From: Mytilus californianus
Lineage: Eukaryota
Assembly: GCF_021869535.1 (NCBI RefSeq)
Contig: NW_026262723.1
Coordinates: 73,222,001-73,286,000, forward strand
Direction of reading: 5' to 3'
Length of the DNA stretch: 64,000 nucleotides
Shown here: positions 14,595 to 64,000 of the stretch, one piece after another
Layout of the letters: each line of letters begins with the position of its first letter
Numbering within the stretch: position 1 is the stretch's first letter
The notes under the pieces: model-generated
What the model saw: only the letters and a program-made list of their open reading frames with translations
What the model was told of the DNA's origin: nothing
Databases searched by the model: none
Made by a program: the position numbers and the translations under genes

Positions 14595-14630
<36 letters not shown>

Positions 14631-17600
14631 TTCTCCACCCAAAACAAATATAAGTGTTGGCAATAGAGGTCATGTTTGTTATCCGATCGGAACAACATTA
14701 CAATATAAAAATAAAATGCTCCGCTGGGCGCAGCTTGATACGACCACAGAGGTCGAACCCTGAACAGTTGGGGCAAGTATGGACACAACATTCAAGCTTG
14801 ATACAGCACTGAATTTGGATTGTGATTAAATATTTGACACAGCATATATATAGGTTTCTGACACAGAATGAATGTGGTCTAAGAACTTAAAAATTTTTGA
14901 TTTACCTATTTAAACCATATCATTATTATTTGCTTTTATATATAAATCAAAAATAACCAATTTAAAATGGGAAAATTTTAAAGAAAAAAAAGGGGAAAAA
15001 AAATCCCCTCCCAATTTTTTGAACCCCCTTATGATTCATCACCCCCAAACTCAATCCCAGCTTTCCCTTTGTGGTATGGTACCTTGCAGTACAATTTCAG
15101 AGAGATCCATACACTTGAACACAAGTTATTGTCTGGAAACTAGAAAAATGCTTGATTTTTTGGCCCCAAATTCCTAAACGTTTCAGGCAATTACCCGCAA
15201 ACTCAAACCCAGCTTTCCCTTTGTGATATGGAACCTTGTAGTACAATTTCATAAAGATCCATACACTTACACACAAGTTATTGTCCAGAAACTAGAAAAA
15301 TGCTTGTTTTTTGCCCCTTTTTGGCCCCTAATTCCTAAAATTTTAAGGAAATTACCCCCAAAATCAATCCCAGCCTTCCATTTGTGGTATGGTACTTTGC
15401 AGTACAATTTCAGAGAGACCCATACACTTGAACACAAGTTATTCTCTGGAAATTAGAAAAATGCTTATTTTTGGCCCCTTTTTGGCCCCTTATTCCTAAA
15501 CCTTTCGGGCAATTACCCCAAACTCAATTCCAGCTTTCCTTTTGTGATATGGAATCTTGTAGTACAATTTCAGAAAGATCCATACACTTACACACAAGTT
15601 ATTGTCATGAAACTAGAAAAATGCTTTTTTGCCCCTTACATGGCCCCTAATTCCTAAAATTTTGAGGCAATTACCCCCAAAATCAATCCCAGCATTCCCT
15701 TTGTGATATGGAACCTTGTGGTACAATGTGAGAGAGATCCATACACTAACACACAAGTTATGTCTGGAAGATACAAAAATGCTTATTTTTGGCCCCTAAT
15801 TCCTTAACTGTTGGTACCATAACCCCCAAAATCAATCCCAACCTTCCTTTTGTGGTATTGAACCTTATGGTAAAATTTCATAGAGATCCATTCACTTAAA
15901 CTAAAGTTAGAGTGCGAAAACCAATGTGTCTTCAGACGACGACGCCAACGTCATACCAATATATGACCGCTTTTTTTGCGGTCGTATAATAAGGAGATGT
16001 GGTATGATTGCCAATAAGACAACTAAACTAACCACCAAAGTTCAAATGAAGTGGGTGTAAACTCATTTAACTATTAAATTAAGTTCGGTCTAATTTGCCA
16101 CTATCGTCAGGGAAGGAAGTCAGCTTATAATTAACTACGGACGATTATTTATGGCAAAACGTCATGCAGCAATTTGGTTCGTTCGAAAAAAAATTAACTT
16201 ACCAAATAACACATTTTAATTTATATTGCATCATAAAAGTAATAGGATATTGTATTACGAACATTTTCGCTCATTACCTAGAACGTCTATAACCGGTTTT
16301 GAAGGATTCAAACATTGCTTTGCTTACTTAACATACCTGGACCATTTTTATTTTTCGGAATTTCTGTGAAATTAACTTTGCTCCGTTTTAATCTGTTAGA
16401 AATGTTCACGAGAGACAAATATTCTAAAAAAAAAAGATCCAAAGGTATTTAATTAGTTTTTAGACAAGAAATGTTTGCTTACCTGAACCACAAGTGGATA
16501 CTAATGGTTTCGATAAATCAATTCCAGTTTCATTGAAAAGTTTTTTAAGCTCTTTTACATCAAGCATAACACCGCTTTCCTTATCCACAATATTTTGGTA
16601 ACAGAGATTCTTTGTACCCGGTATATGACCAGGCTCTATACCTATAATAAAACAGAAAAGTTATTATAAAAAAAAAATGTTAACCAAATCTTTAATACAT
16701 TGACCGAATTTGATCAAACTTTGAATATCAAGATTTCCTACAGATTGTATTAGAGTGGAACTGCTTATTTCTTTTTTTATTATGTAAACCGGGACAAAAA
16801 CGAGCTATGATTTACAGGTTCCCGTCATAATTAAAATAAATAAAAGAGGTCTCGTTTAACTTTTCTTCCAGTACGCACCAGCGGTCAACTGGTCGACTAC
16901 GAGTATCCTGCCTCACTTTTGGAGTTATAACAAAGAAAATTAACATAAAATAGGTTCAATTTATATACTTGTGCAAGTAAAGACATGTCATTTAAGTTTA
17001 ACGATGGAGCTGAGCCTTGAAAGATTCAGTACTCTTACAAGAGACAGTACAGTTGTTTTGTATGATGAAGCTCTGAATGCTTTCTTGTTTTTTTTGTTGT
17101 TGAAAGGGCTTTCATTTGGTATCATTTATATAAGCTCATTTATAAATGTATTGTTTTTTATGATGTTGTTTGTCACTCCCATATTTGTCAAAGCTCTTAT
17201 CTATAATTGAATTTGATCGATACATCATTACTAATCGACTCTTTTTCTTCGTTCCAGTTCTGTATGGTCCTGGACATATGCTTTTTCTTTGGTCGACTTA
17301 TTGGAGATGTTTACATTCCATTTGAGAAAACCGATGGCACGATAGGCTTTGGAGCAGATCTTTAGTATTAACCTCATTTTAGATGTGTCGAAACAACCTT
17401 AATAACTAAATTACCTTCTCTTGGTTCCGGTTTGATTCCCATAAATCGCCCTTCTCCTCGAGCATCCATTAATTGAAATGAATTATCTTTTAAGTTTTTC
17501 TCAATATCCTTGTATGACTTTACTAAATGAGGGTGATAAAGTCCGTGGAATATTGTTTTCGGAACATGAATAACTTCCGATGTCGTCGGTAAACCCTCAG

Positions 17601-18003
17601 AGCACCATTTCATAAAACCACCATCAAGAACAGACACCATTTCATGTCCAAAAACTCTGAACATCCACCAAACTCTAGGAGCAGAAAAAAAACCGTAGTT
17701 TACACTATTATCATAAACAATAACATGAGTGCTTAGATCAATACCTAAGTTGCCTGCATACCGCTCAAAGTGTTTTATGTCTGGTAACATGTGACCGTAT
17801 GGAGAGGATTTATCACAGCATTCGTCAATATCAAAATATGACGCTCCCGGGATATGCTTTTCTTCATATTCTAGTCGACCGTTTCTGTTCGAAGATGGCA
17901 AGTGAAAAGTAGAGTCAAGAATCCTAATGTCTTTTGGAACTCCACTTTTCAAAACATTGTGCAACCATTTAGTTGTGACCAGAGCACTTGCTTTTGTCAA
18001 CAT
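13523..18003 (-). CDS. MPST: 3-mercaptopyruvate sulfurtransferase (tandem rhodanese domains), 297 aa; coding exons 18003-17415, 16641-16483, 13668-13523
   Basis: Rhodanese signatures [42 protein letters not shown]|GIEPGHIPG, active-site loop CGS|GVTA (MPST type, not the CRKGVT of TST) and VYDGSWTEW. Both introns are phase-1 GT-AG; the CDS totals 894 nt. Confidence 0.93.
14598..14627. repeat. (TA)n microsatellite
   Basis: About 15 TA units in the last MPST intron. Confidence 0.95.
14705..15989 (-). mobile_element. Helentron-type non-autonomous element, copy B, with internal ~160-bp tandem array (in the last MPST intron)
   Basis: Core repeats (gatccatacac at 15104, 15256, 15417, 15577, 15736), subterminal inverted repeat gatacgacc/ggtcgtat, end hairpin tgctccgctgggcgca and GAC microsatellite. 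Close inverted match to 43843-45137. Confidence 0.8.
16990..17350 (-). mobile_element. Decayed LINE 3' fragment in the first MPST coding intron
   Basis: The minus strand reads [20 protein letters not shown]...ELERRKR and later ESFKAQL, resembling the post-RT tail of CR1/Jockey-like LINEs. Heavily deleted. Confidence 0.45.
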
Positions 18004-20464
18004 TCTAGAAAAGAAAATACAGATGAAAGGTAAAACTGCAAATGATAAATGAAGTGAACAATTGACTTGAAATTAATGTATATCGCTCACTTTGAATTCG
18101 TTAATGTATTATACAAATAGCAATAAAGGTTGTTTCAATTGAAATGCAAGATTTCATGCTTTAAGCATCTAAATTCTATATAAACTGAAAAAGGTCTCGA
18201 TCCAGATACCATAAGACTTGAAACTGTCAAGAAACATATTCCACCATGGACAATTATTGTTCGTCTTCGTGGTTGCATATAAACTGTTGACTTCTAACCA
18301 ATTTTATAATTGTAGGATCGATAGTAGGATTGGTCCATTGTACCGTTGGACTCAACACATGCGTCACGCGGGCTGGTTACCAAATTAACGCTGACAAATA
18401 TGTTAGTACGGGAATGTTGAGTGTTGATTGCAGTTTTTGTCGTGAGTTGCACACAAAGCCCCTATCACAGTCGGCCACCACAATACCAACTGTTGAGTAC
18501 TCTGCAATTGTCGATTATAGAAAGGACATTCGCCTACCATTTTCCACTAAATATTTTGTGTTTTATGACCATTGAGCTCTTTACTCCTGTTGAATACAGC
18601 CCTCCGATGCTTAGTCGATAACCGAAGATCAAGGAAAGAATTTTCAAATGTAAAATGTTTATTTTTGGGACACCTGACGTCTTTATCATGAGTGAGCAAT
18701 TTCTACTAAATGAAAGATGGCAAGGAGATAAATAACTGATATCATTCCTTTAGTACATGGTTAAAACAGGTAAGGTAGACCTTCTAAACCCAGCACTAGA
18801 TGTCATATCGAACATGTGAGTCAATGCAGCAGAGGATCTCTCAATAGCAAATTTAAAGAATAACGACACCAGATCCGACATACATTGTCACACAGCCGCT
18901 ACTTTGTCAGATACGCTCAACAATATTAGCATATCGTTGTAAATACATGCAGAACAGATTTATTTCTATTTCTATTAGTAAAACATTTGTTTATCACATT
19001 ACATGGATAGAAACCTATGTACCAGATTATTTATTTGATAAAACGGTCAGAATCTTACTATTGTATTTATTTTGCAGGGTATTTTTGATCATTTTTTATT
19101 TAGTATTTGTTATAACCTGAGTTTGTCCAGAAATAAAACGAATCCACCTCAGAAGAAAGTATTGTGTTTTATTAGCCCTAGAAAGTGCTACTACACTTCT
19201 AACTTGTATAGTTCATCCATATTTTTTTTTTCTCTGAATGGAGGAACAAAAAATGTGGTGTACATCTGGGAACAATATATGTGTTCCTGTGTACATTTAT
19301 CGTTAAAAAATAACAGTTCTACTTTCGTAAATTGCACAACCTTTTTTCTAGTGGTCATAAAAAAGTTTTGTTTCACAGTTTTGATAGGCGTTTGCTATCT
19401 GTACATGACATACAGGTTTTGTCTTAAACCTTCAGAAATGAAACTTGAGATTCAGTTCAAACTTTAGAACAAAATATTCATGGTATAGTTAATTTTGTTA
19501 AAATTGAACTGATGGGGTGTCTCATATTACTTTGTTTTGTAAATTTAAGGACTAGTGACTACCAAAGTTTGTCATAATGAAACTATGACATTTTTTGCTT
19601 CCATGCTCGACATCTTTCCAAACTGAATTTGAAAGGAATATGAATTTGGCTTCTTCTTCTTCTTCTTCTTCCAGGTAAGGAACCGGATTCAAAATTGAAT
19701 GTTATTGGTTCCGCACGAAAAATTCTGACAGCAGATACTACAACAGAACAAAACCAAATTCTGCAGGGGGAAATGATATGTGACCATGACACAAGAGATT
19801 TAATAGTGAAGTACTGAATATCTTATTTTATCTAAATCAAGTTATACAATTGTACTAAGTCTGTTTTGAATTGTAATTTAAACCGGCGTGTTCGATCCAA
19901 CTAAGATACTTTTTTAACGTTAACGGGTACCTCAGTCAGTATGGTACTGAGACACGGCCCGTCTTTCCAGACATAAACATATCATAAGTTTCTCTCTTCC
20001 CGGGACACAAACGTTTGGTGACACCAAAAGTACAAAGTTACGTTAGGGTGTCAATTAAACAAATCGAGGCGTGTTCGATTATATTTCGGACGTGACCTAC
20101 AGGCTACACTACAGTTGACACAGTTTTGTGTCCTCTATAAATGTAAATAGGCTTTATTCGCGCAAAAAGTATGTAACTTAGCCATTCGTTTACACAACTA
20201 TCATGACTATGAAGGTGAAATATTTTTCTCACCTTTCTGAAAGACAAGAGCATTGATGAATTACTTCCCTTTTTGTTTTTGTGTACATGCATACAACATT
20301 GAAAAGAAATGTAAAATAGTATCATTAGCTTTGTAAATATTAGCTTAAAGACTATACAAAATCACAGGAGGCATGTCACTAAAATATCTTACTACTTTGA
20401 ATTAAACAAAGCAAATGTTTATAATTGATATTAACGTAAGCGACATAACTTCTTTTGTGTGAAA

Positions 20465-45499: not shown

Positions 45500-47515
45500 T
45501 TTCTTCTGACAGGTAAACAACACATTGAACAAGTGTCTACTTTAAATGGTAAGCTTTTAACTGTCTCAAATCTTTACAAAATGTTGAATCTGAAGACATG
45601 ATAAAACTGACAAACACTGACTTGTCAATACCTGCCTAAACATGTGGTGTTCAATTATTTCATGTTCACATGATTTTGTATAATAGCAATTAGAATTATG
45701 TAATTATTAATTAAACCCAAATTAAAACATTAACGGAACACAAGCCAATCTGTAAAGACGGTCCTCGCAAATATATTATTTATCTTTTATTTACAGGTGC
45801 AACAATAAAGATAATTATATTAATTTAATAACTAATTTAATTACCAGGATTACTAAATGTTTTATGTAATGATTAAGATTATTTAATTACTAGTATCACT
45901 ACATAAAATTTTCGGCAACAAATGAAATTAGAAGTCGGGTTAAAGCGAGTAATTAAACACAATGACAGAGACATATACACACATGAAAAACTATATACTA
46001 TGTACTATACATGTCTCTGACAATGGTAATGAAATATGGAAAGTAAGGAACCAGTTACCTTGTTAGTAGTTGTATGTGATATGGAAGTATTATATTGCCG
46101 TACGGTTGCCCACAATTGCTTACATCCACTTCATTTGAACTTTGGTGGATAGTTGTCTCATTATCTCCTTATTTTTATATATTACTTCCATGGTCATATG
46201 TATTTCGTTATTTGGAGAATCGGGTGTTAATGACAAATCTTTCATTGTTTCTCTTAAATTTAATCACAACTTTATAGACTCGTGATGATAAAGAGATATA
46301 CATATATATTGCATACACACCTGTCTAATGTTGAACCCTGAATGTTGGTCTCAAAATGTCTTTTGGTTTATTTTTGTCATTTGGTGGCTGTCCGTTGACG
46401 TATTCACCCAAATCTCTTTTAAATCATATGTTAAAACGTAGCTTGCTATGCTGTATGGGTATTTCTCATTGCTGAAGGCCGTACGGTGACATAGTTTCAA
46501 GTAACTTTTACGTCATTTGGTCTCTGGTGGAGAGTTGTCTCATTGGAAATCATACTACAACTTATTTTTATATCAATATAACATTATATTCATAAATTAT
46601 ATGTTATTTTGGGTCCCAGTTTCCAAAACCGACGTCTTCGACATGGACAACAGTGACACAAGACAACAGAAGTGCACATTATGCGTGTCGCTACAAATTC
46701 TCATTTACATGTTAGGTCCAACATAAATAAAAGATAATCGTGATGTTAAAAATAACTTTGTTATAACCTGGATGACTTCCTAGCGAATTGATGTTATAAA
46801 ATGTTAAAGTCACTCAGTCATGAAATAAAGACTTCGGGAACTGATATGTTGCCACGGAATGGAGTACGAGGGTAATATACACTTACTATACCGATTTCAG
46901 AGCGCAAGACTTGTAAGAGATAACCTGTGACGTTTTTTATTTAAATCTTGTGAAATATAGAGATACCATTACATGAAAAACTTTACGACAGACAAGGGTA
47001 CGCAGGTCGACAATCCACTACTTCATTTGTGGTAATAACCCTCTCAAGATCGTATATTTGATTTATGCAAACTGTCCTGTTTATTTCTAAATGTAATACT
47101 TAACTCACATTACCGATATTTGTATTTACATTTGTAAATATGAAAAAAAATATTATTAATTCAACAATAAAAATATTAATAAGCTTTCAAATGGCCCGCT
47201 GAGACATTGTCGGTTTTTTTCAATTGTCTATTCTTTATAACCATTATATGTAGTTGAATGAGAATTTCGATTATAAATTAACATGTATTTTTTGTTTATC
47301 CAATTCTCCATTAACAAAGTGCTAAAAGAACAATAATTGATATACATCGGTTATATTTATTGAAAAACTTCAATTGATTTACCTGTGTTGGGTTTAAATA
47401 CCTATATACTATTTCACGGTTTCACGGTACTCTGATTATACCTACCTATTCAACAGTAGACTTGAAACTTTAAGTTAATTCGTAGTATTCTGAGATAAGT
47501 TCAGACCAGGATGTT

Positions 47516-47597
47516 ATGAAGTTGATCATGACGGAACATTACATTTTAAAATTGTGTTTTTTATGTCTCGGATTATTACAGTATGGATCATCTGAAA
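47516..47597 (+). CDS. Candidate first coding exon (signal peptide) of the Hedge/M15-fold gene
   Basis: MKLIMTEHYILKLCFLCLGLLQYGSSE (alternative ATG at 47528) has a hydrophobic core and small residues before a cleavage point, then a strong donor a|gtaagt in phase 1, matching the phase-1 acceptor at 56066. The link across 8.5 kb is inferred. Confidence 0.55.
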
Positions 47598-50500
47598 GTA
47601 AGTAAACTATTTAATGTACTAAATAATTCATTTTGGGGTAAACTCGAGGAAGTATATTCTGTAACTCCTGTCTTGAGTTGTTCTATACAGAGACATATAT
47701 ATACAAATATCTGTCTCTGTTATGTACAATTAAAAGATATAAGATATTAGATATGTGGGTTTGTTCCTTTATACGATATTTTGGTTGCCACATACCAATC
47801 AGATGCAATATTGTAGTGTGGAGATGTAAGTGTTTATAAGAATAAAAATAGATCACCAAGCATCATATCAAAATACACTATTTTGAGAACATATTTCCTG
47901 TTGTGTCACAGTGATATTTTGATCGCATGTACATAGGCAACTTGTCAGTAAGATTTATATTCACAAAGCTTCTAGTGAATGGATTTATTCAATTATTTTA
48001 GCTGTGTTCTACGATATTTCGGTATTCTAGGAACCAAATATCTTATAGTTCAACATTTATTTGTTTGTTGTGGTATTCAAAGCACGGCTTTAAATAGATT
48101 GTCTAAAAAGCATTATAAATAATACGCAATCATGATTCATAAAGTATTTCTAAAGAAGAAAAAAATGGATTTATCATGAACAAGGAACACACAAATATAC
48201 CTGATCCACTTTGTTAATATTTATTTTAGTGTTAATCTGGGGAAAAAAAACATGTTGGGACAGACATACCAAATAAAACAACATGACATAAAAATCTGAA
48301 ACTAAACTATGCACTCGAGGTTCAGATAAATCATATAATAAGCCTATTGTTTCATAATAAAGCTTTATCAACATTTAAACCAAATCTAATAAACAAAAGA
48401 TGAACCACCGAGAAAAGGGAAGAACGCATTTCCCGTACATAATCCACATGTTAGCCTTGTGTATAACTCTAGGTTATTCGACGGAAAACGTCTATCTAAA
48501 AGTTTTTGAATATTTATGAATAATTTGTGAAGATTTTTTCTTTAGATTATTTCAGACTTTTTAATATCGAAATTCTGTGTTATGTAAGGTATCTCACTTC
48601 TGTTGTACTAAATAATTCAGTATACTAAATGACTGACAATTGCTAATAATCTATTTAATTGTTTTGATTACACGATTTGGGTAAAACAAAACAAAACATA
48701 GGTCCCACGAATTTATTTCACATGGCTGCCTTTTACAATAAGTCTTTCGATCCTTGCTGAAATAATAACACTTCATATGACCAAATAATATATGCGTATA
48801 AAAGTAGCTCAAAACTACAATTTTGATACAGATATAGCCCGGTAAAATGGCGTTCCGGCTAAATGGAAATCAAGAAGGAATATTTCGCTCCTTAAACTTT
48901 TATTTTAGCAGTCCGGCAAGACCGAACAACAAACTCCAAACCAAATGTAAAGTAACATACAAACAATAACATTAAACCATTGTGGTGACGTCAGCCTATT
49001 CATTTACCGTGGATTCTTTTTCTAGAATCAACGCTTCCTAAATCTGCCGCTGAAATTGACTCACCAAATTATATTCAATTGTTTCCTTTGTGTGCCTAAT
49101 TTCATTAAGTTTGAATTGGCTAATTTACTGATTTCTGTTCACTAATGGAATTAATTTAAAAACTTACCTTTAATTTTTGTAATTTTTATATGCCTTCACT
49201 GGGAATCGAACCCTTCCTTGAAATCTGTTATGTGTGACTGACATCAAAAATATAACACTTCTACCTTTAAAGATGTTCATATTACCAGGCATATGAATAT
49301 TATCTGTTTATAAAAAATAAGACATATTCGAAATTATTTCTAATAAAATTGAGTAACCTTATTCAATCTTTATTATCTTCCCCAAAATTGACTGTGTTTT
49401 AGATATAATTGTAGAAACCTTAAACTCCCAAAAGAAAAAAATATCCGAATTTTCAAACATGATCAAGATTTGATCAGAATTAATATTTCTTTTACCTTAA
49501 TAAAGTGTTATTTATAACGACACGGGTCATCATCATCGTCATCAAAACCTACGTCGTCATCACAAAAAATAATGTTTCACTCTTTTTATTTCTTTCTTTA
49601 TCTCTTCTTCACTTATAATTTGTATCATATCCTATAAATTGTTCTCTTAACATACATACATTTTCATGTTATATATATAATTGTTATAATGTTATATTGT
49701 ATTACGGAAAAGACCTCTTAAATACGCGTTTTTTTTTTGTGTCTAATTCATTTTGATTAGTATGTTATTGGAATGAAAATAGTCTAAAAGTTAAATCACA
49801 AGATACAAACATATTTCCTTCATGTCCTTGACAGTGAAAAATTAAAGTACAGGTATTTAAACACTCACAAGAGTATCCATGGCACCTTTCTGACAACAAC
49901 AAAAACCCGAAACAAATTAAAAAAAACAACAAAAACAACCATAATTCGATTTAGCAAATGAAAGGTCTTATTACGTACAGTAAAAGCAAGAAAAACAACT
50001 AAGATCAACTTAAATACGTGTCTATTTAATCCATCGACTTGTCCTCGTAAATGGTGCTTGATATACATGCTTTTCTCTAAACTTTAATCAATTTTTAGTA
50101 ATAAGTGATACTTTTATGATTTTAAAAACACGAGTACCCGAAAACCAGGATGGTTAATCACGTCATATCTAGGGCTAGTTTAGTTCGCAGGTCATGTATC
50201 AATAATTTATTGATAATTCAGCCTTGACAAAATTTAAAACATACAGTTACAGTCGAATAAACCGCTATTCAATTTCATGTTTCACTCATATTTTATAATA
50301 TTAGGTATTACCATCAACAATTTAAGTTGTTGGCTTCAATGATTATATAAACAAACTTTGTATATGTTTGTTATTGTGTGGGGAAACCCAAGTTCAACTC
50401 GGTAGGAGTCTGGGATTCCATTTGGTCAGATTAAAAACCAAATCAAAAAAAGTTTCAACTGATATGATCGTATACTGATTTTATTGAAAAACAATTACTA

Positions 50501-51276
50501 GAATATTATATACGATTTTTGATGAAAAATGCATGCGCTTCGAGTTGAAGCAAAGTTCAAAATATACCGCGATAGCCAAAGGCGATACATATAAAGTTGA
50601 AAAAGCTAAAAAGTAAAAAGGCTTAAAACTACCGCATGTAAAAGTTGTACAATGATCCTGCAAGAGTATTAGAAACAACCACAGACCAAGAAATCTCCCC
50701 CATACTATTGATTTTTTTTGCAAGGGTTAAAGGTAGCTCACTTTAGGTACAGTAATACCGAAACAATGACTTACTTTGTAGACTTCTGTGTATATATGCA
50801 TGTTTATTTGTTTGTTTGTGTGTTTGTTTTGAATGGTGCGTGCGTATTTTGTTTTGTTTTATTAAACAGATAATATCCTTATTATATCCATATAAAAAAA
50901 ACACCACTCATAACTGTTCAAATAATAGGTTTTGAAGGGAAATATATATAATTGACACTAGTTAGAAGAAGGGAAGATGATTTTTACAAGCCTTCTTCAA
51001 TGGATTTTATACGTGACAACCGCCTTTTCGAAGCTTTCTAAATATCCATTCTGTGGGATCTTGTACATTCTTTGAATACTTGGCTTTTGTGTTTACATAA
51101 GGGTCCAGTTATGCTTGAAAACCGTTTAATGGTTAGCAAGCATACCGTGAGCAGGTAAAAAAACTGAAAAATAAATGTGCATGTCTGTCCTGGAGAGGTG
51201 GTCTTTTGATGTATTTGTTAATATGAAGGTACCATTTCAAGATATAAACTTTTTATCACCACTCTGAAATGATGTT

Positions 51277-51530
51277 GGGGATCGCTTCGGTGCCCGAGTG
51301 GTTTAAGTAGTTCGTCTACTGTATCACTAGCCTGTCAACACTGAGGTTGTGAGTTCGAACCACGCACGTTCGACTCCTATCTTGATCGACCCGGATTGCC
51401 AATTTTCCTGTCGAATGTCTGTGGTTCTCGACGGGCACTCTGGCTTCCTCAACCAATAAAAACTGGCCGCCACGAAATAGCCAATAGTACTAAAAGTGGC
51501 GTTAAAAACTAAATAATTACTCAATCAATC
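51277..51530 (+). mobile_element. tRNA-derived SINE (V-domain-like core)
   Basis: A-box-like tgcccgagtggtttaag, B-box-like ggttgtgagttcgaacc, core gtggttctcgacgggcactctggcttcctc and tail tcaatcaatc. Confidence 0.75.
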
Positions 51531-53169
51531 ACACGATGTTGGCGAACATACAATAATCAAGAAAGATAGAAATTTTAAGTTCACCGATTGCAATTAACCT
51601 TTCAAAAATAACTTCATACAAGTCATGATATTCACAGAAAATTAAGAAATACCAGTTTTAGAGATTTAACATAAGATTTCCCTATAATTTATTTGCACTC
51701 TACTATTGTATATAGTTTTAAAATGACAGAAATGAATAAAACTGGGGATTAGATAAAAAAAAAAAATGTCGACTACAATAACCTACTGTATTTCACTTCA
51801 AAAGGAAGTTTGACTTGTAAGATATGATATGCAACGTAGATCAAATGATATATTTTTAAGTGACAAACCAATATGCTTACGATTTTGATCACTTGATTTG
51901 GGATTAACAAAGACAACATGATATTTGTAGTTCACTGTAAGATCTTCTTTGATGCTTATTTCTATTTGATACGTTGACTACATAGACTATATGTCGAACT
52001 AATAGGAAGATAAAATCTGTATTTATATTCCGGGTACTTTTTCTAAGAGAAATATATAAAGTCAACTTTACTGCGTTTAGAGCCAAACTGTAAGTTACGC
52101 ACGGGACCAAAATGATTATAAAATCTGCACGGTCCATGACCAACTTTGGCCGCATGGTGTAACACTTTCTTTAGAATATAGACCGTAGAATTATCTTCGT
52201 GTCTGGAAGTTTTTCATGATGACATGCGATAGTAATGAATCGACAGAAGTTTTCAATCTCTCATGCAATCATCACCATTTTCACCGTCGGTATACTGTTC
52301 TTCATCTGGTGAAAATAACAATTTATAAATTGCGAGCGTCTGAAGCGCTACACTGTCTTTTAATGTTATACGGTTTCTAATAAAGTGAATGACCAAGCAG
52401 ATGATCACTTTAAGAAGTTTCTCCTCGACGTTGGGTTTTCTTAAATTTTTCTTAGGTTCGCTCTTCTCTTCTAATGCAGCCTGATGTCACGCATGAGGTG
52501 GTAATGCCTGTTTGATACCTTTTCTTATATCTATATACCTTTTATAAAACAAAACCATATCGAATTATGGACAGACAAATCAAGTTATGCTGATAATTAA
52601 ACGTAGACAAGACCTTGAACTGTTGTCAGTGTCTTCAGAAAAAAGTGATGCCATGCATAGAATGATTCTTCTACCACAGTTTTTCCAGGCAGTCACCACT
52701 TTTGTATTGTGCTATCCCGAATAAGTTAAAGACAACACTAAACGAGAAAGAGAAAATTCTGCGAATCGCCAATTAAGCGTCTTTAAATAGCCACAAGATT
52801 TATAGTTTATATCAAACAGGTTAACATAGTAAAATTCAGCTGACGCAACCAAATCTATCTCGATCATGCCAGATGTCAACCGATAATTCAAGAGAGTTGA
52901 ACACAGTCAACCATCCAACAACATCAATGTAAAAAAAATGTATTTACCTTTACTGAGTGGCAATATACCTACTTCTGCTGCATACAGTGTTCATTTTTAA
53001 CTGTATAGCTTGTTACAACTAATGTGATTTCCTCAACAGAGCAACCTTGTGTCTGAGAAATCCAGTTTGCGTTATACTCAGACTGTGCTGTGAGGCCGCT
53101 GAGAAATTTACTAATTACCAAATGCCAATGGTTTTCATAGGACTGCAGTCATACTAGTCTAATTTTTAT

Positions 53170-53835
53170 CTTTCTTTTATCGAAATCAATTAACTACTGG
53201 CCGAATATGAAAGAAATACATGCTTTGACTGCTGACCATTAAGATAATGCTACAATAGAAACAACGAATTCTTTCCCATAAGAGCAGACGATAGATTTGA
53301 GTTCGTAGATTGCAAGCTTTTTTTTAACATTATTGTGATATTTTTATATCATGATATGTATATAATTATCTATGCATTAGTGTCGGTGTTTTGTTTGGTT
53401 TTGTCTGTAATGTTTTTCCAGATAGGTAGGAATCATTTTGGGCATTTGAGGCGAGCACGCTATATAAGTTGAGGAGGACAACTTGGCATGAAAACACTTT
53501 TCTATTTTTCTTTCATCGAAATCAATTCATTATTGGCCGAATAAAAAAAATGCCCTGTTTGCTTGGCATTAAGACAATACCACATGCGAAACAATAAATG
53601 CTTCCCCATAAGAGCGAGTAATATTTTCCACAGTTTTTATTAGCGTTCGTAATTCCAAGCTTTAGTTTTCAGTATTCTGAACTTTATTTCATATGCCTGA
53701 CACTATTTATGTACTAGTGTCGGTGTTCTGTTGGTTTATGTCTGTCTTATTTTTCCGGACAGGTATTAATTATTTGGGGCATTTGAGGCGAGCAAGCTAC
53801 TTAGTTTGAGGACAGCTTGGCACGAAGCATTGTTT
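53170..53835. repeat. Diverged ~338-bp tandem duplication
   Basis: tttct.t.atcgaaatcaatt...ttggccgaata...cccataagagc...tagtgtcggtgtt...gggcatttgaggcgagca...gaggaca.cttggca occurs at ~53170 and ~53508. Confidence 0.75.
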
Positions 53836-56065
53836 TTTTTTTCCATTTTGTGTGTTTGCTTTTTCCTATTTGGTTTGATGGAGGTTTATATCTTTGACCT
53901 TTCACTTCTATTTCTGTTACTTTGTGTATTGTATGATTATGTCAATTTGGCCTGCGAGATCGCGACAGTCATATGGAAGTATTCGAATAATGTACACAAC
54001 AACCGTTTACACAGAAGTTGTTTTATGTGTTGTCAAACAGCGAAATTTCAATAAGATTTGAATTGTTTATATATATTTTTTAATCTTCAGTTTACGACTG
54101 GTGAAACTTTTACTTTGGTTTATTTGGTTTATTTGTATGTTTTGGTGTTTAGTGTGGCGTCCATTTTGCTGAATTATGATACATTATTGTTCAGGAGTCG
54201 GCCGAAGCCCGCCTCCGGGTACGGGATTTTCTCGTTGCGTTGAAGACCCATTGGTAGCCTTGTGCTGTTTTATGCTCTTTGGTCGGGTTGTTGTCTCTCT
54301 GATACATTTCCAGTTTCAATTCTCTATTCAATCAACTGAACATCCAATGTCAAATGATCGAAAAACTAGAATTGGACGCTTGAAAAGATAGATAAAGACA
54401 GTTTTACAGGTGATATGTATGAACTGTAAAAAAAAAACCCATCTTCCTCCATTAAATAGTTTCTCTATTTTACAATCAATAAATTACAAATGTACACTCG
54501 TTACTCTTTTTATGCACAAACATTCATTTATGAACGAAACAGTTAAATATACAATATGTTACAACAATGACCGTGTTCCAATACTGTTGAAGCTTAAGAC
54601 CGGGTAGACCCTGACAGACAGTTTCATATCAAATTACTTAAAAGAAAACCGTTAGTATGAACTCCAATAATTGTAACTATCTTACCACGTGTAAGTGTCT
54701 TTTATAATTTAGAAAAACGATTGGTATGTGTCACTGAGCATTTATTTTAGGAAATTAGCTTCAGTGTACATGAGGTCAAAAGGTTTGAAAGAAGAAATAA
54801 ATGAAAATATTGTTTGAAAGGAAAAATAAATGCAAATAATGCTGTACTACATTTATTGAACTGATTTGGCCCGTATTCAAGAAGGGACGAACTAATTTTC
54901 TTCGTGTATTGCTACTTAATTTTCATGGGTATGATCAACTAATCATGTGGCACAATATATTTCCAAGTCATTGTTGATAATGTAAATACTAATTTGTAAG
55001 TATTATGGATTTTCCCCCCTTGTAATGACTTGATAAAATTAAGGGAACGTGGTCTCATACGATTGGATGAAAAAGAAAGCTTATTGTTGATATTTATAAC
55101 GTTTAAATGACTCTCGAATAAGGTAAATCAAAGCTTTCCACTACACCGTGTATAAATAAAATACTCGATACGACAGAAAGTCGATTATGCATTTTGTTGA
55201 AAACTTTTACTTTTTATCTAAGTGTCACATTCATGTATAGACTAACATGATATCGTCTTCAAAATAACTTTGAAGTGATTTTGAGTTTAGAATTGTTGTT
55301 TGTTTAGTGTTTGTTTTGAAGTTCACGTAGTAATATGGTCAATAATCCTTCTTGGTCATTTATGAGTTACAGAAAAAAAAACATATATATCATTTCACAA
55401 ATGTATAGTTAAGTTAGATTTTACCCCCAAAAATCTTGTTTTTTACATGAATAAAAGGAAATGTGCGATATACGCCTATGGCACAGCAATCAAACGGCAC
55501 AAAATCACTGAATTGCGAATTGCAGAAAGTAAGGACAAGAGCACAGCGCAACGTTGTGATATAGTTGTGATACAAGTCTGGATTTTGGCGGTTTAGAGCT
55601 TGGTATAGACATTTGTCTATTGTTGGAGTTGCCACTTGGAACACTGGCCTCTTTTTATTCATTGAAGTTTAAGGTAGACACTCTGAGGGTAGACATATTT
55701 CCCTTTATTTATGTTTGAGGTGTGTCTTAATTTTTAAAAGCATGAACATAGATTTCCAGTGAAATAAAAAGATAGACGTACTGACACAGCAACCGGTACA
55801 TTAAGATTATAAATGAGGATGTATGCTTTTACCAACAAAGAAAGGGATGTGAGGAACTAATTCAACAAAGCAGAGATTATCACACACAGAAAAAGCAACA
55901 CAGTTATGAAATGAAACAATATATGACTATGGTATTCAAAGAAAATTTATTTACACAGAAGCATTTGAAGATTTTATGAAGGGCATTTTTAGTAAAAAAA
56001 GTTTACATTGTAAGATTTAATTTGTTATTAAAGGTTCTGAAAGTTGTGTTTTTTTTTTCTTATAG

Positions 56066-59000
56066 AGATAGCGTTTGATACCGGTATTAGTTTGGACGTT
56101 GTTGACCCAGACCTGTTGGGAACGGAAAAAGATAATGTTGCTGATCCAGTCAATACAGGTATGTGTTCATCAAAATCAACCAATTCATAAAGAAAGTCAA
56201 TTAAAGTCTCGCAATTTGAGAGAAAGTTTTTTTTACCATACGTTACAAATTCAAGAAACATACAGACCGAAAGCGAAAATATATTATAGTATGCATACAT
56301 TAATTATGGAAACTTTTATCAGATGAATGCGTTATGTTGAGAATCAAACAGATTTAACTACTGAATAAATCAATTTAAAAATTCGGACCTGCAGTTTACG
56401 GATTTTTTCGTGTATTTCTGATAGCGTGTGCATCGAGATTGGTTCACACTATTAGTACCATCCTTTGATATGTGCATAATTAGCCAATAAAAGTTCTCAT
56501 ATTTAATAAAATGTAAGGTACTTGCCTCCAAATATTTGATGTTGGTATAATTGTTAAAACTCCCTTGATCTTGCAGGGAGCTACTTGTTTAAAGCAAAAA
56601 ATGATGGTGACACCAGAGCTTTGACATTGAACATACTGGTACGAGATTTCAAGTCGGCAGATTCGCTGTACTTTAGGGCTCATCCAACTTTCCTAAAATG
56701 TATACAAGCCGCCATGACCAAACTCAGAAATGCTGATAAACAGGTAAAATATTATAAAAATAGATAGTAGCAAAGAAAAAAAACCAAACGTAACAAGAAT
56801 AATATTTTAGGATTTTCTCCTGGAGTTTTCATGAAATATGAATCAAGAACGTCCCTCTTAAATTGGCAGTTTTCATACACTATAACCAAAAGCAATAGCT
56901 TTACAAAATTGAATGCCGTATGCAAGGCACGCCCGCACAAAAAAAAAATTCTATTTTAAGGAATTTTAAACTTACAAACTGAAAAAATGTATCCAGTAGA
57001 TATCAGTTCTTTATACTAGACGATCAATGTAGTAGAAGATTCCAATTTCAGCAGCACATATTAATGCCAAAAGTTCTTTTTCACAAACATGTAATTGCGA
57101 GGGTACACACTTTTTATCAAGTCTCAGACACAAATGTATATCTTGTTTAAAATTGTTAATAAGTGATAAACACATCTCTCATACTATACTTCTCTGTTTC
57201 AAGGTCGCAGTTAAGCAAGGGTTTCAAACACACAATGACGTTGGAGGTGGTACCTCAGACAGAGAAAATTACCTTAGAAGCGGTGCTGGTATCACACTAC
57301 AGGCTAAGCAGGGAGTAACTGTCACTCTGGACGAAATCGTCACTGCTGTCTTGCAAACATGTCCTGTTCCTATGATGGTAAGTAGCAGTTCTTAAACCCC
57401 TTGAGCATACGCCCTCTTCCAATAATTTTATGTATTGTATAGACAGTTGTCATCTATAATTTGTTATATTCAAATTGAAGATGACAACATATTGCGGTTC
57501 TATTCACATGCATCTTGCAATCCAAATTACTAGTATATATTCATTCCTGTCTGGAAACAATGATTCCTGTTCCGGTGTCTTAGTTTACGCCATTTTGAAA
57601 ATATTGACCTCTTGTAACTGTCAGCGTATTGTCGTTTCGGTGTGCTCTATAGTGTATTCCTTACCAGTGCGTTTATTCCGTCGGAAATGAAACACTAGGG
57701 GAAACACGCCGGGGATCATTTTCATAATTATTTCTCCAAAAGGAAGTCAATTCCAGAAAAGATTCACTGTTGCATGACAACACTAGTATATAACATGTAT
57801 ATCTGTCTTCGAACCACGCCGTCTGTAGTAGCAATCATGTTTCGATAACATCTTTAACATTAGGTTTGTCATCAAAACGCAATCAGACCAATTGATGCCT
57901 TTTGATGAAACATCATTTCTGTCTTGAAAATGGTACCTGCTCCAATTATTTAAAATATTTAAACTTGTCGATAATATCTCTGGTATGTTATGTCCAATCA
58001 AGACAAAAGCAAAGTGATTAATTATCAATGAATCAAATCATATCGCTACGAAATGGCAACTTCTGTACTCCACAAAGTATCGAACCAAACTATTATATAG
58101 AAAATCTGAAAATATTTCATCTGCCGCTCATCTCAGCTGTTGCAAATTAGACATTTGGCTTTCAGTAAGAGAGCATATAGGAATCTCTTCCTCAAAAATG
58201 AAATCTCAGGAGAAGTTAAATCTCAATGTTATTACACCTTTACCGGTAAGGACCCATATATACTTAAGGAAACACCAATAGGATATAAAATAGAAAGAAG
58301 TCAGATATTCCATAAAAAAGCGAATTAAATACACACTCTAGCGTATGAGCAATGTTAAAACATCGAATCTGGCCACTTAAATCGCTAAGTAGACCATACA
58401 TTTGTAAGATGGACAGGGACATGAATGCCATCGACTTATTTTACAAGACGACAACATATATGCAAAAATCTTTCGAGATACCAATATCACGAACTAAAAC
58501 ACATGATAATGTTTTATCCACGCATCACTTAAGTCTCGATTCCTTAGTAGCAGATTCCCTAAGCATTGTAGCTTTTACTATTTTATAAAAATAAGGAGAT
58601 GTGGTATTATTACCAATAAGACCACGATCGACCAGACACAAAAAGATAATGCAAACAACCATAGGCTAGCATAGGGGACTAAAAGGCATGAACTTAAACC
58701 CATACCGTAAAGTAAATCAGTCTTGGATGGAAAGCGGTCTCATTGGCACTCATACCACATCTTCTTATATCTATTTACATTTACTCAAATTATTTATATA
58801 TAACAGAAATTAGAGAGAGACATTGGCATTGAGAAACTTGCGGATGGCGTCCATGTTCACATGAAAGGAGCTACCCATACTTCAGGACCAACGTTCACTG
58901 GCGTGTCAGGAGAGTATGATGATATAAATGCTGGCTTAGGTAATACTGTCTTATTACAATCAATTGAAACACTGATATATATATAAGATTGTTTTTTTTA

Positions 59001-62000
59001 TTTGTTTTGAATATGCACTTGGCCTTTAACAGTCCTATACAAGTAGGTGAATGGGGATATGAATGCCTAATCTCCATCTCAGATTTCTTTGGTCTTCAAA
59101 CTACTTAGTAGTCTGAGTATACTATTTTAGATATAAAACAATGACCATTTTATATCTATTCATCAAACTTGAATACCCTCTCTGTAAAAACAAGAATTGA
59201 ATGTTAACAATATCACTAGGCAATGAATATATAGATATGTCAAAAGTCCGTCGTTTGCAATGAGAAACAACCAAAATCTTATGAATGAAAAAAACAGAAG
59301 GTGCAAAAACTAATTAAGTACTGTATATTTTCTTAAAGTTTCATCGATCGTGTATTGGAGGAGGTGCGAACACAAACGGACATATACGGCGATCTTTTTA
59401 CTGTACATTATACAACTTGGCCATACTTTGGAAATACAAACTTGCTTCATTCATAGTTACATGGAAAGCAAAAATAATCTGAAAATTTATTCATAACCAT
59501 TGAATAAGATCTTTCTTCTGTGTTCATTTTAGATCCACAGAAAATACCAGATTGTTCCAATCTTAACACAGTTGCAGATGGTGCGTACTATCCTGGTGGA
59601 TACGATGATCCAACAAAAGTAGTAGGTGTAGTTGATGAACCAGTGGATAGAACTATGACAGTAGATGCCAGCAGGTATGTGGGCAGAATTGTTTAAATAA
59701 TTGATTTGTCAAACAGGTATCGATATGACGGTGGAAAGTAGCGGGTAAGATACCGGAGGAATAGAAATTCAAAGTAAAGAATAACAATTTCCCACAGTTA
59801 AATTGACCTAAGGTGGTTAAGAACATTCGTTGTTGGTCCTTTTGATTATGTAGCCCATGTATAAGTACATCTATGGCAGTCCGAGTTTTTTATCTTTTGG
59901 CATATCGAACTCAGAAAAAGATAGTTTACTTTAATTAACTTTGTGTCACACGTGAAACAGCTCCTTTTAACCCTTCCGGAGTAACTGAGATCACTTCCGG
60001 TTTTAATCTTTAGTTTTCTATATCGTGTTTTGTATTCTGTTGATTATCGTTTTGTCATTTTTCGATTTTTGCCATGGAGTTGCCAGTTTGTTTTCGATTT
60101 CCCTTTGGTTTCTACTGTCTCTCTTTTGTACCATCCTGTATTGATTTAACATCGTCAACGCTCATGACTACAGTTTCATATAGGCACAGAAAATTACAAT
60201 AAATATATTTGGAATACAACCAAAACAAAAATCCAAAAAGGCCCTTTAGAGATAAACCATTAACTTTGTCTTGGAGAGTATTTAGCATAAAAAATGGTTT
60301 CTTTATATAAGTTGACGTATCCTTTTTTCGGTAAACATGTTTATTACCATGTCAGCGCACCCGTTCTCGCTTCTTTTGGAGTTCATGCGATTTTCTCAGT
60401 ATTTGTTTCTTAAATTGGTTTATCTCTTTTCGATCTACTATCGCCTTAGTTTATCAACGAATGATTTGGTTATCAACACATACTTGGATGTGATTTGTCC
60501 GTTAGAAAACTCCCCTTTGGTTTACACTTTCGTAACCTATTTAAACACTGTGATTTATTTATGTGCAGTACACATGAATGAAATCCTGGGTTCTAAGAAA
60601 ATTGAAATTGAAGTAAAAAAAATAAAAAATGTTCGTGTTCAGAATTATAAGGATTTAAGGGCATACGACACAGTTTTGATCCCACGGTGATTTATTACGA
60701 AAATTTGCATACAAGCTATTTTTCACCCAGTCAATTCAAATATGTAATAAAAAATAAACCTTCATGTGCCACTTTAAGAGATAAATGGGGTCGAAATTTT
60801 AGACATTTACTCAAAATTTTTGTTTTTTGGACATTTCTATCCCTTGGATAGACATACCTAACTTTTTTGTTTCAAAAGATAAACAAAAATGGATTTTTGT
60901 AAAAACATTTGGAAAATCTTCTTTACATAAGTATGGTCTAAATTTGTATAACAATTCTTTGGAAATAATTAATTTTTATCAAAGTTTCATGATTTTAGAA
61001 AATAAACGGCATTTTTTGCTGTATATTTATCTAATTTAAAAAAATTTCATCTGTGACTTTTTCATAACATTTGGTACAAAAAATCAGAGGTTATTGATGG
61101 GTAAACTTGATCGCTGACTCAAAAACTTTACATTCAGTTTGTGACTTCATCGACCCAATGTACACATCAATTAATAACCTCTAAACAAAATGTGGCTATT
61201 AGGTTAAAACTACATGACTGTAAAATTCAGTAAAAATACTTTTTTCCATTCTCAATTTTATTTTTAAAATATACTGTTTAATTCAATTTTTTTAGACTTG
61301 TACAGTATTTGGGTAACAACGTCGACTTCAGTGATTGTGCAAATTATGCAGGAAATGCATTAACTGGACCTACGCTAAGGTAAGAACAATTTTGTACGGA
61401 TTAATACCAGAGCATATAAAGATATTACACACAAAAAAAAATCAAATGGTAAAAAGAAGTATTGCAAATTGTAGAATTTGTCCTGCAAAATAAATATTTG
61501 TGATCCTAATCCATAAAAATACTATTTTATGGCAAGTTATTTCAGCTTAATGACTTTATTTCATCTATGAACTTTTTGTAAAGAAAAATGTTGAAAAAAT
61601 CCAATTAGGTTTAATTTTGATTTTAGGTGTGCACAAAGAACGATGACAACAAGAATGTACAATGCCGTAAAATACTTACAAAAAATGGTTATAGATAATA
61701 TGTCAGGTAAGACAAGATATATAGCCAATGCTTTAATCGTTGATATGAGAAACACTATCAAATACCAAACAACAAGCCTGCTTTAATTGAATAAAAACAA
61801 AAAAGATATTTAATATGACTTTTTAATCATTGTTTGTATTGCATTTTTCAATAATTACATAAAAAACTAGAATCAAATTGCATATTCAAAAAGAAAAGGG
61901 CATCATTGTATGATAATTCTTCACTAAGCAAGCAATCTAATAAACACATATTGTTATTAGATGTTTAGTTATGGAGACAATACTACAAGTAACCGAAACT

Positions 62001-63392
62001 AATTTAATTCATCGACATTACTATGCGCTTTCACAAAAATCGGCCGAAATTGTGGACATCCAGATATTTTATAACAACACTTATAATAAGTAGTAACGGT
62101 TTTATCCAATAGGCAAGTTGGAGATCACAAAAGCATGGGACGATACAGGTGCAAATCCAGATTCTCTCCATTCGGAAGGTAGAGCTCTGACAGTACAGCT
62201 CAAGGCATCATCTTCGTCAGCAGATATGACAACGCTGTCACGATATGCTATATGTGCGGGTGTAGATTATGTTGCACACAAAGGTTTGTATGCTTTGATA
62301 TTGTAAACAATAATGGTATCCTTAAAGTAAGTATTGTAAACCAATGCTATCGATTTGGTTTATATTTTTCTTTATAAGAAATAATTCAAAGACGGTACTA
62401 AGAAAGCCTAAAAACAAATATAATAGTGACATTTCTTTTATAAAAGCTTAATCAATGATTTCCTAGTAATTTGTTGCATTCACCCATAATGTTTCTCTTT
62501 GAAATTTATATTGATGTGGACTGCATCATGGCTAGTACCAGTGTAGAGAAGAAAAGTTATAAGGTAAAATTAGGAAAATACAATTTAAAATGAAAATAAC
62601 ACTTAGTAAATTTCATGTGTCCTTAGCCCTTCTTTAGATTTACATTCACCAGGAACACGAAATACATACAGAATTTATGATAAGCAAAACAAAGGGCCAA
62701 GAAATCACTGTTTTTCAAAGAATTTTTTTTTTTCATAGGTGATCACCTCTTGCTAGCTGTAAAGAAAATGAAGGGTGATATAGCTAATATGATCCAGTTT
62801 AAATCCATTCAACTGATGGCAGTAGAACCACCATCTTCGAAAGCGTCATACTACAGTTTGCCATCTGAATTTACAGAAACTGAGATTAATGCCAAATATT
62901 CCCTGTTTGACAGCAGTGGTCGGGTTAGTATAAACATTAATATTAGTGTATCAGTAACAAGTAGATGGTAGAAATGCATTTTGTATTCGAATTAGTCATG
63001 CCTTTTATGTACTGTATTAGTGATGCCTTTCACCACATTTATTAGAAGTAATATTCAGGATTTGTATCAGCACTCATATTCAGCATCTATTTGGTTTACA
63101 TGATATAACGTTTAGGAGATGAGACAAAAAGACAATTTTTAATTAAAGGGAACAACTCAATAAAGTTTGGTGACCGTCTTTTAGAATTACATTCATTTAT
63201 CATAATTGATACAAAACACAATACATATTGAAATAATTCAATTATTGCAGGAAGATTTCAAGCTAAACGACAATGCTACAGTTGGAATGTTTATGTCACA
63301 AGATCCAGACTACCGTTACTTTAGATTAGACCCTAGAATAGTCGAATGTTATTCTTCAATAGTTGACAGTGAAAACAAAAACTCAGATGACT
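56066..63392 (+). CDS. Hedgehog/DD-peptidase-fold multidomain protein (M15A-like, Hedge, M15A-like), 3'-incomplete; exons 56066-56158, 56577-56743, 57204-57377, 58807-58939, 59533-59674, 61296-61379, 61627-61706, 62113-62283, 62739-62923, 63251-63392
   Basis: Ten GT-AG exons join without stops (phases 1,0,0,1,2,2,1,1,0,1). Exons at 59533-62765 align by eye with Hedgehog N-domains: LVQYLGNNVDFSD, AQRTMTTRM, KLEITKAWDDTG, SLHSEGRALTV, LSRYAICAGVDYV, DHLLLAVK versus Shh LTPNYNPDIIFKD, ADRLMTQRC, KLRVTEGWDEDG, SLHYEGRAVDI, LARLAVEAGFDWV, AHIHCSVK. Confidence 0.85.
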
Positions 63393-63519
63393 GTAAGTAT
63401 GATATTTAGAAATACTTGTTTATTTCGGAATTGGCTTGTTAAAACGATATTGTTTTTATTGTAAAATTTTCAGTTTATAAATTTTGTAATTGCACTAATA
63501 GAGGTTGTGACTTCTTCAG

Positions 63520-64000
63520 GTAAAGATGTCCTCAGACGAGAGGTGTCATCTTTAGACTCATTTAGATTTGCTGTTCTGTTTTTGACATCTAAAACTTTTG
63601 GTCTCGATCGAACCTGGTGAAGGTTATGACCGACACATTTTTGTGCTTACTGAATTTGGCAGTATACCTTCATATAACTACTACTTGGTCGATGTCTCTG
63701 CTAATGGTCCGTTAGTCCCCGAGGGAATCATTCACCCAGATTTCAGAGCCTTGGTAGGATTTAAAAGATGTATTTTAATTGAAAATGTTCATGTTATAAA
63801 TGATGACATTGCAGTAAAAGTATGGCTGCAACTCTCTCAAATTTGACTGTCATGTTGAAACTCGTTGATATGTTGCTGCTCTCATTTATTTTAAGTTTAC
63901 TTATTTTTGATTCCAAAACTGCTGGTCTATCGCATATCTTACGATGGTTATTCCAGAAACGCGTGTCATGTACATGCAAATCGATAGACTGCATACCTGT
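63520..64000. repeat. Dispersed repeat fragment in the intron after the last visible exon
   Basis: No phase-compatible coding continuation was found. The sequence (ggtcgatgtctctgctaatggtccgttagtccccgaggg...) looks like a recurrent bivalve repeat; this is from recall and was not searched. Confidence 0.4.

Follow-up and report, generated by a model that had tools for sequence, protein, structure and literature searches.

Gene structure and expression

The DNA considered here is a stretch of 64,000 nucleotides from Mytilus californianus (assembly GCF_021869535.1, contig NW_026262723.1, positions 73,222,001 to 73,286,000 of the forward strand), referred to below as the window. It contains the 5' half of a gene (11 exons and 484 codons, corresponding to residues 1-484), which extends beyond position 64000 and encodes a predicted secreted protein carrying the signalling domain of Hedgehog (Hedge) outside a hedgehog gene. 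An initial annotation had proposed ten phase-compatible exons for this gene, together with a complete Hedge domain and a third kind of Hedge architecture in a mollusc. It is a genuine gene that is expressed and whose splicing agrees with the exons read from the sequence.

All ten of these exons (E1 to E10) were re-derived within 56066-63392 (+), every one being flanked by AG and GT and having a compatible phase, and once joined they form a single open frame of 456 amino acids with no stops or frame breaks. As regards the extent of the gene, its continuation past 64000 was borne out, although it starts earlier than had been proposed, in an exon 0 whose coding part occupies 47516..47597 (+). This exon, found by tblastn with residues 2-24 of P0020 (the Mytilus coruscus counterpart described below), sits 8.5 kb upstream of E1, has its ATG at position 47516, is bounded by a GT donor (47598), and supplies the start codon and a typical hydrophobic signal peptide (MKLIMTEHYILKLCFLCLGLLQYGSS, followed by EK). 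Its final base is base 1 of a split Lys codon, and the join between exon 0 and E1 is in frame. The resulting N-terminus is similar to that of P0021 from Mytilus edulis, and secretion of the product is inferred, with a mature protein beginning at EKIAFDTG and lacking, as anticipated, the CGPG start of Hedgehog. A minimal upstream open reading frame (ATG TTA TGA, at 47511-47519) is present in the 5' leader and overlaps the main ATG.

The remaining exons, all of them on the + strand, distribute three domains along the visible part of the protein. Exon 1 (56066..56158) encodes the N-terminal linker that follows the signal peptide, and exon 2 (56577..56743) the beginning of an M15A-like domain, named here domain A; both exons have AG/GT flanks, keep the frame and match P0020, with which exon 1 is collinear. 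The core of domain A lies in exon 3 (57204..57377), where a degenerate YLRSGAGITL replaces the H-x6-D motif, and its end (VHVHM), together with a linker, in exon 4 (58807..58939). Hedge then begins in exon 5 (59533..59674; TKVVG), continues with a shortened Cys-bracketed loop in exon 6 (61296..61379), a helix in exon 7 (61627..61706; RCAQRTMTTRMYNAV) and the core in exon 8 (62113..62283; SLHSEGRA), and finishes in exon 9 (62739..62923; DHLLLAVK), which also holds a linker and the start of a second M15A-like domain, domain C. Exon 10 (63251..63392) encodes the first helix and strands of domain C, and the transcript runs on past the window.

The splicing of the gene was followed in RNA contigs placed on 58001-64000, and three runs, from two samples and two studies, show the junctions. 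In X1 (one contig of 3657 nt) and in X3 (1870 nt), E4 to E10 are joined exactly, with every joint of the GT..AG type (58939 to 59533, 59674 to 61296, 61379 to 61627, 61706 to 62113, 62283 to 62739, and 62923 to 63251). X5, which comes from a different study and has shorter contigs, contains four of these six junctions (E4-E5, E5-E6, E6-E7, and E9-E10). The contig sequence that precedes 58807 corresponds to the last 30 bases of E3, whereas that found after 63392 continues the frame (..DD, then LIEVEVIRGY). Since E4 begins at position 537 of X1, the 536 nucleotides before it are accounted for by 434 from E1-E3, 82 from the coding part of exon 0, and 20 of 5' untranslated region; that is, X1 reaches 102 nt upstream of E1. 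RNA depth is zero in the intronic bins outside repeats. Of the words sampled from the 7.3-kb stretch, about 15% occur in RNA runs carrying the same species label, a figure near the 19% that is exonic.

Over 456 residues, the protein encoded in the window shares 97.6% identity with P0020 of Mytilus coruscus, a 925-amino-acid "unnamed protein product" whose UniRef name is "Hedgehog N-terminal signalling domain-containing protein". At ~86-97% DNA identity, the window is collinear with the public locus of M. coruscus, and the two are syntenic, since the window and the M. coruscus contig (L001:1-2818) have the same upstream neighbour, a SIR2-family (sirtuin) gene. In that species the locus has six further coding exons, the next one being located ~1 kb downstream, which would correspond to roughly 400 bp beyond the end of the window. 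Thus, the gene is already annotated in the public M. coruscus gene set, yet it is uncharacterised; the initial annotation was right in supposing the latter, although a gene predicted in public sets can hardly be called hidden. The full architecture discussed below was read from P0020 and about 25 relatives.

The Hedge domain

The Hedge domain as a whole extends over 58936..62776 (+), corresponding to residues ~216-388 of the window protein, and it starts at about residue 215, ~190 residues beyond the signal peptide, in agreement with the earlier claim that it lies some 200 or more residues into a protein that is not a hedgehog product. When the exons were taken singly, E8 matched the Pfam family HH_signal (PF01085) with 34.5 bits (gathering cut-off 22.1, E 2e-8) and also aligned with the sequences of Shh, Ihh, and Dhh structures, while the other single exons, which are too short, gave no Pfam match. 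P0020 reaches 42.7 bits with a span that begins in exon 7, and all full-length relatives score above the threshold (26-80 bits), the coverage being usually of profile positions ~68-155 of 161 and, in one member, of 15-154. A profile of the family Hedge compared against the PDB recovered Hedgehog N-domains exclusively, the best of them being ShhN (E 4.8e-19). This match consists of two pieces, Shh 5-61 (weak, and including exon 5) and Shh 58-158 (strong), separated by a family-specific loop, which in most members is rich in Cys and in Mytilus is short. Because both pieces are collinear with ShhN, the sequence comparison indicates a domain that is complete in order, as had been claimed, with a divergent first third.

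The SLH-x-EGRA signature is conserved in the family, and the equivalent of Shh His141 is retained in 20 of 21 members, including exon 8 of the window. The other metal-site positions have a different fate. Across the same 21 members, no Asp is found at the equivalent of Shh Asp148 (the residue there being K, T, E, V, R, or L, with Thr in exon 8 of the window), no His at that of His183 (Leu in exon 9), and mostly Lys at that of Glu177. The acids of the calcium site are partly retained in other phyla and mostly lost in Mytilus.

Run X21 (2026 RNA-seq, same species label) contains only a diverged transcript, in which ~30 exonic sites (59533-63392) differ in every read. Its E8/E9 join reads HKDTYLLL, against HKGDHLLL in the window, and the residue equivalent to Shh His181 thus varies within the genus. 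This version is a second allele or a paralogue.

In Hedgehog proteins, the calcium sites constitute much of the known partner-binding surface. This has to be taken into account when considering whether the protein could act as a ligand or decoy of the Hedgehog pathway, its Hedge domain binding Patched, Ihog/CDO/BOC or HHIP-type partners and modulating the signalling. In favour of such a role, a bona fide Hedge has been conserved for more than 500 million years in animals that also have Hedgehog signalling. However, every member has other residues at the equivalents of Asp148, His183, and Glu177, most of the calcium-site residues have disappeared in Mytilus, the domain occupies an internal position, and there is neither a palmitoylation motif nor a Hog domain for cholesterol addition, all of which make this role improbable.

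The M15A-like domains

The segment that follows Hedge, described at first as peptidase-like and standing in the place of Hint/Hog, is domain C, of which the window shows the N-terminal third (62879..63392, +; residues ~423-484). Its AlphaFold2 model, built from a 21-sequence alignment, has a confidence (pLDDT) of 84.8. The top 50 Foldseek matches of this model in the PDB are all Hedgehog N-domains or LAS peptidases (VanXY, VanY, LdcB, ChiX, and endolysins), those in AlphaFold DB are "Peptidase M15A C-terminal domain" and DUF882 proteins (E 1e-8 to 1e-4), and the comparison with ESM Atlas clusters of PF08291/PF05951 gives template-modelling (TM) scores of 0.69 (query) and 0.88 (hit) with a root-mean-square deviation of 2.1 Å. 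Domain A (56609..58884, +; residues ~70-198) is homologous to domain C according to hhalign (probability 99.4%, E 1.8e-21, 131 columns), and its fold was assigned on this basis. Thus, A and C are both predicted to be domains of the Peptidase_M15_3 type with the LAS (Hedgehog/DD-peptidase) fold.

The search strategy suggested with the initial annotation gave a divided result, since HH_signal was matched, whereas Peptidase_M15_3 (PF08291) was not recognised by sequence and the corresponding fold was reached by structure only. Neither domain A nor domain C, each taken from 21 members, matched any M15 family (PF08291, PF05951, PF02557, and similar ones), even when E values up to 10 were admitted. 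The relationship of Hedge with its neighbours is also weak in hhalign (probability 24% with A and 3% with C); therefore, no sequence-level proof is claimed that Hedge is a diverged copy of either of them.

None of the three domains has a complete zinc triad, each of them being devoid of at least two of the three ligands. In domain C, His is found in 17 of 21 members at the first position, Q, E, R, or A replace the Asp, and F-V-D replaces H-x-H, while domain A has R or Q for the first His, Leu for the Asp, and H-x-H kept only in part. An active peptidase was rejected on the grounds that these metal ligands have been lost. P0017, a bacterial-looking protein of 1127 amino acids, has two intact Hedgehog/DD-peptidase domains (SIHYEGRAADM..., HVHAS) along with amidase-like and peptidoglycan-binding regions, and serves as an intact-motif comparator for the degenerate animal domains.

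The proposal of a tandem protein of Hedgehog/DD-peptidase fold fits A, Hedge, and C, but the alternation goes no further, because a polybasic site and a domain of another fold follow C.

The polybasic site and the C-terminal domain

Beyond the window, a motif R-[RK]-R-R-R separates domain C from the C-terminal domain in at least 20 of 21 members (KRKRRRKR in Mytilus). It fits the furin-type motif R-X-[KR]-R and is located in a linker of this secretory protein. Nine invariant cysteines occur within the last 280 residues, and nine conserved cysteines are in fact found on either side of the polybasic site. Apart from the signal peptide, P0020 shows no transmembrane or hydrophobic segment, and in the full-length members (918-960 amino acids) HH_signal is the sole Pfam family, with no Hint, VWA, or cadherin domains. 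The downstream parts by which the protein might have been placed in a hedgehog or hedgling gene are therefore missing from the full-length homologue; taken together with the HH_signal match and with the joints seen in RNA, nothing was found that contradicts the initial annotation in its essentials.

The C-terminal domain gave no match in Pfam (19 domains scanned; Rib_hydrolayse included) or, by profile, among PDB sequences, and a region-restricted search with it returned family members only. In contrast with these sequence searches, the top 50 Foldseek matches of its AlphaFold2 model (pLDDT 79.9) are all CD38, BST-1, or Aplysia ADP-ribosyl cyclase, with probability 1.0. Both lobes of the ADP-ribosyl cyclase fold are matched over ~200 residues, the Aplysia enzyme being the best match, and structure searches of AlphaFold DB and ESM Atlas likewise lead to PF02267 proteins. 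The domain is, on the strength of these models, predicted to have the ADP-ribosyl cyclase/CD38 fold. A language-model feature search also listed a PF02267 cluster for this domain, which is regarded as a lead only.

Catalysis by CD38 involves two Glu and two Trp (PMC12605009). In the family's C-terminal domain, one Trp is invariant (in CNNLLHW), a second Trp is present in 16 of 19 members, and a conserved acidic cluster D-E-x-[DE] comes right after a core strand, but there is no invariant Glu. In an alignment that we take only as a lead, an invariant Arg presumably occupies the position of CD38 Glu146, with no acid at that of Glu226.

These features bear on the possibility that the protein is a targeted extracellular enzyme, in which the CD38-like domain would be an active NAD glycohydrolase/ADP-ribosyl cyclase and the peptidase-fold domains would anchor or regulate it, for instance as a pro-region removed at the furin site. 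The match of the whole two-lobed cyclase fold, the two Trp, and the acidic cluster speak for it, as does a shorter, apparently paralogous family that pairs one M15A-like domain with the same C-terminal domain. Set against the lack of an invariant Glu and of any match to the Rib_hydrolayse sequence model, they leave an active enzyme as a tentative alternative, unlikely on balance, to the non-catalytic protein that is preferred here.

The shorter proteins are A0A8B6GDD1 (678 amino acids) and A0A2T7NW12 (583 amino acids), both uncharacterised entries of AlphaFold DB in which one M15A-like domain precedes the CD38-like C-terminal domain and Hedge is missing. These proteins seem to represent a paralogous family, and because they carry just that pair, the M15A plus CD38-like combination may be the core unit of these proteins.

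Distribution and descent of the family

The family was found by word-seeded searches, so that the groups given here are at least those holding members. These comprise the bivalves Mytilus, Pinctada, Pecten, Ylistrum, Mercenaria, Tegillarca, and Solemya; the gastropods Patella, Batillaria, and Lottia (the last via AlphaFold DB); the annelid Owenia; the nemertean Lineus; the starfish Asterias; and three species of Branchiostoma. Members from these five phyla have the same architecture and identities of ~35-45% across phyla, and extra copies occur in Mytilus, Solemya, and Branchiostoma. In a maximum-likelihood tree, starfish and amphioxus form one clade (support 100/99), the window protein adjoins that of M. 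coruscus, and pteriomorph bivalves and gastropods are grouped sensibly. As the tree roughly follows the species tree, these sequences fit vertical descent from a bilaterian ancestor, and they make up an uncharacterised family conserved across non-vertebrate Bilateria. The third Hedge architecture that had been proposed belongs neither to hedgehog nor to hedgling; it is not specific to molluscs, being shared by Lophotrochozoa, Echinodermata, and Cephalochordata.

Some of the public models of relatives are fused or truncated (P0031 with 1691 amino acids, P0032 with 2043, and P0008 with 766), which might suggest that the gene is a chimeric model, a pseudogene, or a chance frame. Nevertheless, spliced RNA contigs in three runs, among them one long transcript, a frame free of stops and breaks in the window, and an architecture and length maintained in five phyla render this extremely improbable, and on this transcript and conservation evidence a gene-model artefact was rejected.

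An immune or microbe-directed effector has also been considered, in which the dead M15A and Hedge domains would recognise peptidoglycan stem peptides and the CD38-like domain would be the effector. The nearest structural neighbours of domain C are cell-wall DD- and LD-peptidases and phage endolysins, and additional copies exist in three genera. Moreover, bacterial toxins are known to include the ARC fold among their domains, and animals are believed to have received it from polymorphic toxins (PMC3482391; PMC12605009). Against this, the low copy number, the inheritance in species-tree order, and the degree of identity across phyla are unlike what is seen in fast-evolving immune effectors, and this function is considered unlikely.

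No description of the family was found in the open-access full-text literature, and in the literature examined the Hedge domain is placed in Hedgehog and hedgling only. "Lophohog" and further "Hh-related" genes of molluscs were discarded as possible members, given that they encode Hog-domain proteins and hence are distinct. The folds are known; the family, like its architecture, appears to be new. P0043 from Branchiostoma lanceolatum (945 amino acids), a member of the family, is publicly annotated as "SHH", a misnomer that could mislead counts of hedgehog genes in amphioxus.

Other features of the locus

Downstream of the gene in the M. coruscus contig, the opposite strand carries a PDZ/DUF4749 gene. 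A search of Rfam with 47000-64000 of the window gave no match. The intron between E3 and E4 contains, at 58600-58800 (core ~58737-58775), an element with a word depth of 2,000-19,000 in all four RNA runs, as opposed to ~10-110 for the exons, and with hundreds of differing flanks joined to it. This element does not seem to belong to the gene and is probably a dispersed repeat of very high abundance, similar to the tail of a short interspersed element or a miniature inverted-repeat transposable element (SINE/MITE-like). In the E5-E6 intron, 60650-60950 and ~61000-61200 are covered by numerous short RNA contigs whose letters vary and whose internal joints are unusual, and these regions look like transcribed repeats rather than exons.

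Proposed function and origin

Taking into account all of the above, it is proposed, with a probability of about 0.72, that the gene encodes a soluble secreted protein of ~925 amino acids formed by a signal peptide, domain A, Hedge, domain C, an R-[KR]-R-R-R site, and a CD38-fold domain, which is non-catalytic and processed by a convertase. Such a protein would not be a peptidase. Nor would it be a lipid-modified Hedgehog morphogen, because it has neither the CGPG start nor a Hog domain. A convertase of the furin type would probably cleave it in the secretory pathway, giving rise to two fragments: an N-terminal one with three domains, which may bind a peptide or glycan ligand, and a CD38-like C-terminal piece. 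Since the conserved cysteines that flank the cleavage site are odd in number on both sides, one disulfide, predicted to link the Cys of the linker (about residue 619 of P0020) with the C-terminal domain, could tether the two fragments.

Several points weigh against this proposal. The convertase cleavage, the disulfide between the fragments, and the binding role are inferred. Profile searches of Pfam and of PDB sequences with domains A and C gave no match, and the M15A and CD38 relationships, which are invisible in the sequence, come from AlphaFold models based on 19-21 sequences; for the C-terminal domain, the Foldseek TM scores against CD38 are only 0.4-0.5. In addition, the evidence for the E0-E1, E1-E2, and E2-E3 junctions consists of homology and contig-length arithmetic.

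The origin of Hedge is debated between hedgling and bacterial Hedgehog/DD-peptidases. To our knowledge, textbooks place this domain in just two animal contexts, hedgehog and, outside bilaterians, hedgling. The family described here adds a third one, bilaterian-wide, in which Hedge is flanked on both sides by an M15A domain of bacterial type and is joined to a domain of the CD38 fold. All of its parts derive from folds that serve bacteria in their cell-wall and toxin systems, which makes it a concrete family for testing where Hedge came from. It has been proposed that Hedge derived from bacterial Hedgehog/DD-peptidases (PMC6027127), and polymorphic toxins are regarded as the source from which animals obtained ARC and Hint (PMC3482391). 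It might then be speculated, as a rather improbable scenario, that the family is a surviving relative of the protein in which animal Hedge arose, a bacterial-style M15A plus ARC protein having been acquired early, one of its M15A modules having become Hedge, and this module having later been joined to Hog. Were this true, Hedgehog ligands and the CD38/cyclic ADP-ribose enzymes would be linked physically to one bacterial conflict-system ancestor.

Whatever its origin, the proposed soluble, convertase-processed protein defines an unstudied secreted product in model invertebrates (amphioxus, oysters, mussels, Owenia, and starfish) that is amenable to knock-out and assay. The amphioxus copy named "SHH" is flagged as a source of mis-annotation.

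Comparison with known systems

The order of parts in the family resembles that of the bacterial Tox-ARC polymorphic toxins, in which N-terminal modules are followed by a processing site and a C-terminal ARC fold, and its M15A/Hedgehog-type domains are also of bacterial type. The family differs from them in that its gene belongs to animals, contains introns, and is inherited vertically; the same combination of domains was found in no bacterial protein, nor was there any evidence of toxicity or an immunity partner.

With respect to the M15A peptidases (PF08291), represented by the zinc D-Ala-D-Ala carboxypeptidase of Streptomyces albus (1lbu), MepK, and phage endolysins, A and C have an incomplete His/Asp/His zinc triad, no sequence match to the M15 models, and an animal secreted context. 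The likeness to CD38, BST-1, and ADP-ribosyl cyclase (PF02267) includes both lobes of the fold, an extracellular and cysteine-rich nature, and presence in the same animal groups. However, in the present family the domain is placed behind three peptidase-fold domains, has nine conserved cysteines in a pattern of its own and no invariant Glu, and is not recognised by sequence models.

The hedgling protein of sponges and cnidarians also has Hedge without Hog in a large extracellular protein, and an incomplete Hedgehog/DD-peptidase metal motif has been reported for it (PMC6027127), as is seen in the present family. Hedgling is otherwise built in a different way, with an N-terminal Hedge, VWA, cadherin/EGF repeats, and a transmembrane segment in more than 3000 amino acids, whereas the family has none of those additional parts, an internal Hedge, and ~925 amino acids, and is present in bilaterians, where hedgling is undescribed. 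Membership of hedgling was rejected, owing to the lack of VWA/cadherin repeats and of a membrane anchor.

Finally, the family shares with Hedgehog (Hh/Shh) a Hedge collinear with ShhN, the conserved SLH-x-EGRA, and secretion. Belonging to hedgehog was nonetheless rejected, in view of the missing Hog and CGPG start. In the mussel protein, Hedge is internal (~residue 215) and has no palmitoylation start; the G|CF site, Hint/Hog, and the sterol-recognition region are absent, and a linker and an M15A-fold domain follow instead; the equivalents of Asp148, His183, and Glu177 are replaced, and there is an extra Cys-bracketed loop. Whereas Hedgehog separates its N- and C-terminal parts by means of an autoprocessing domain, this family has a convertase motif in that place.

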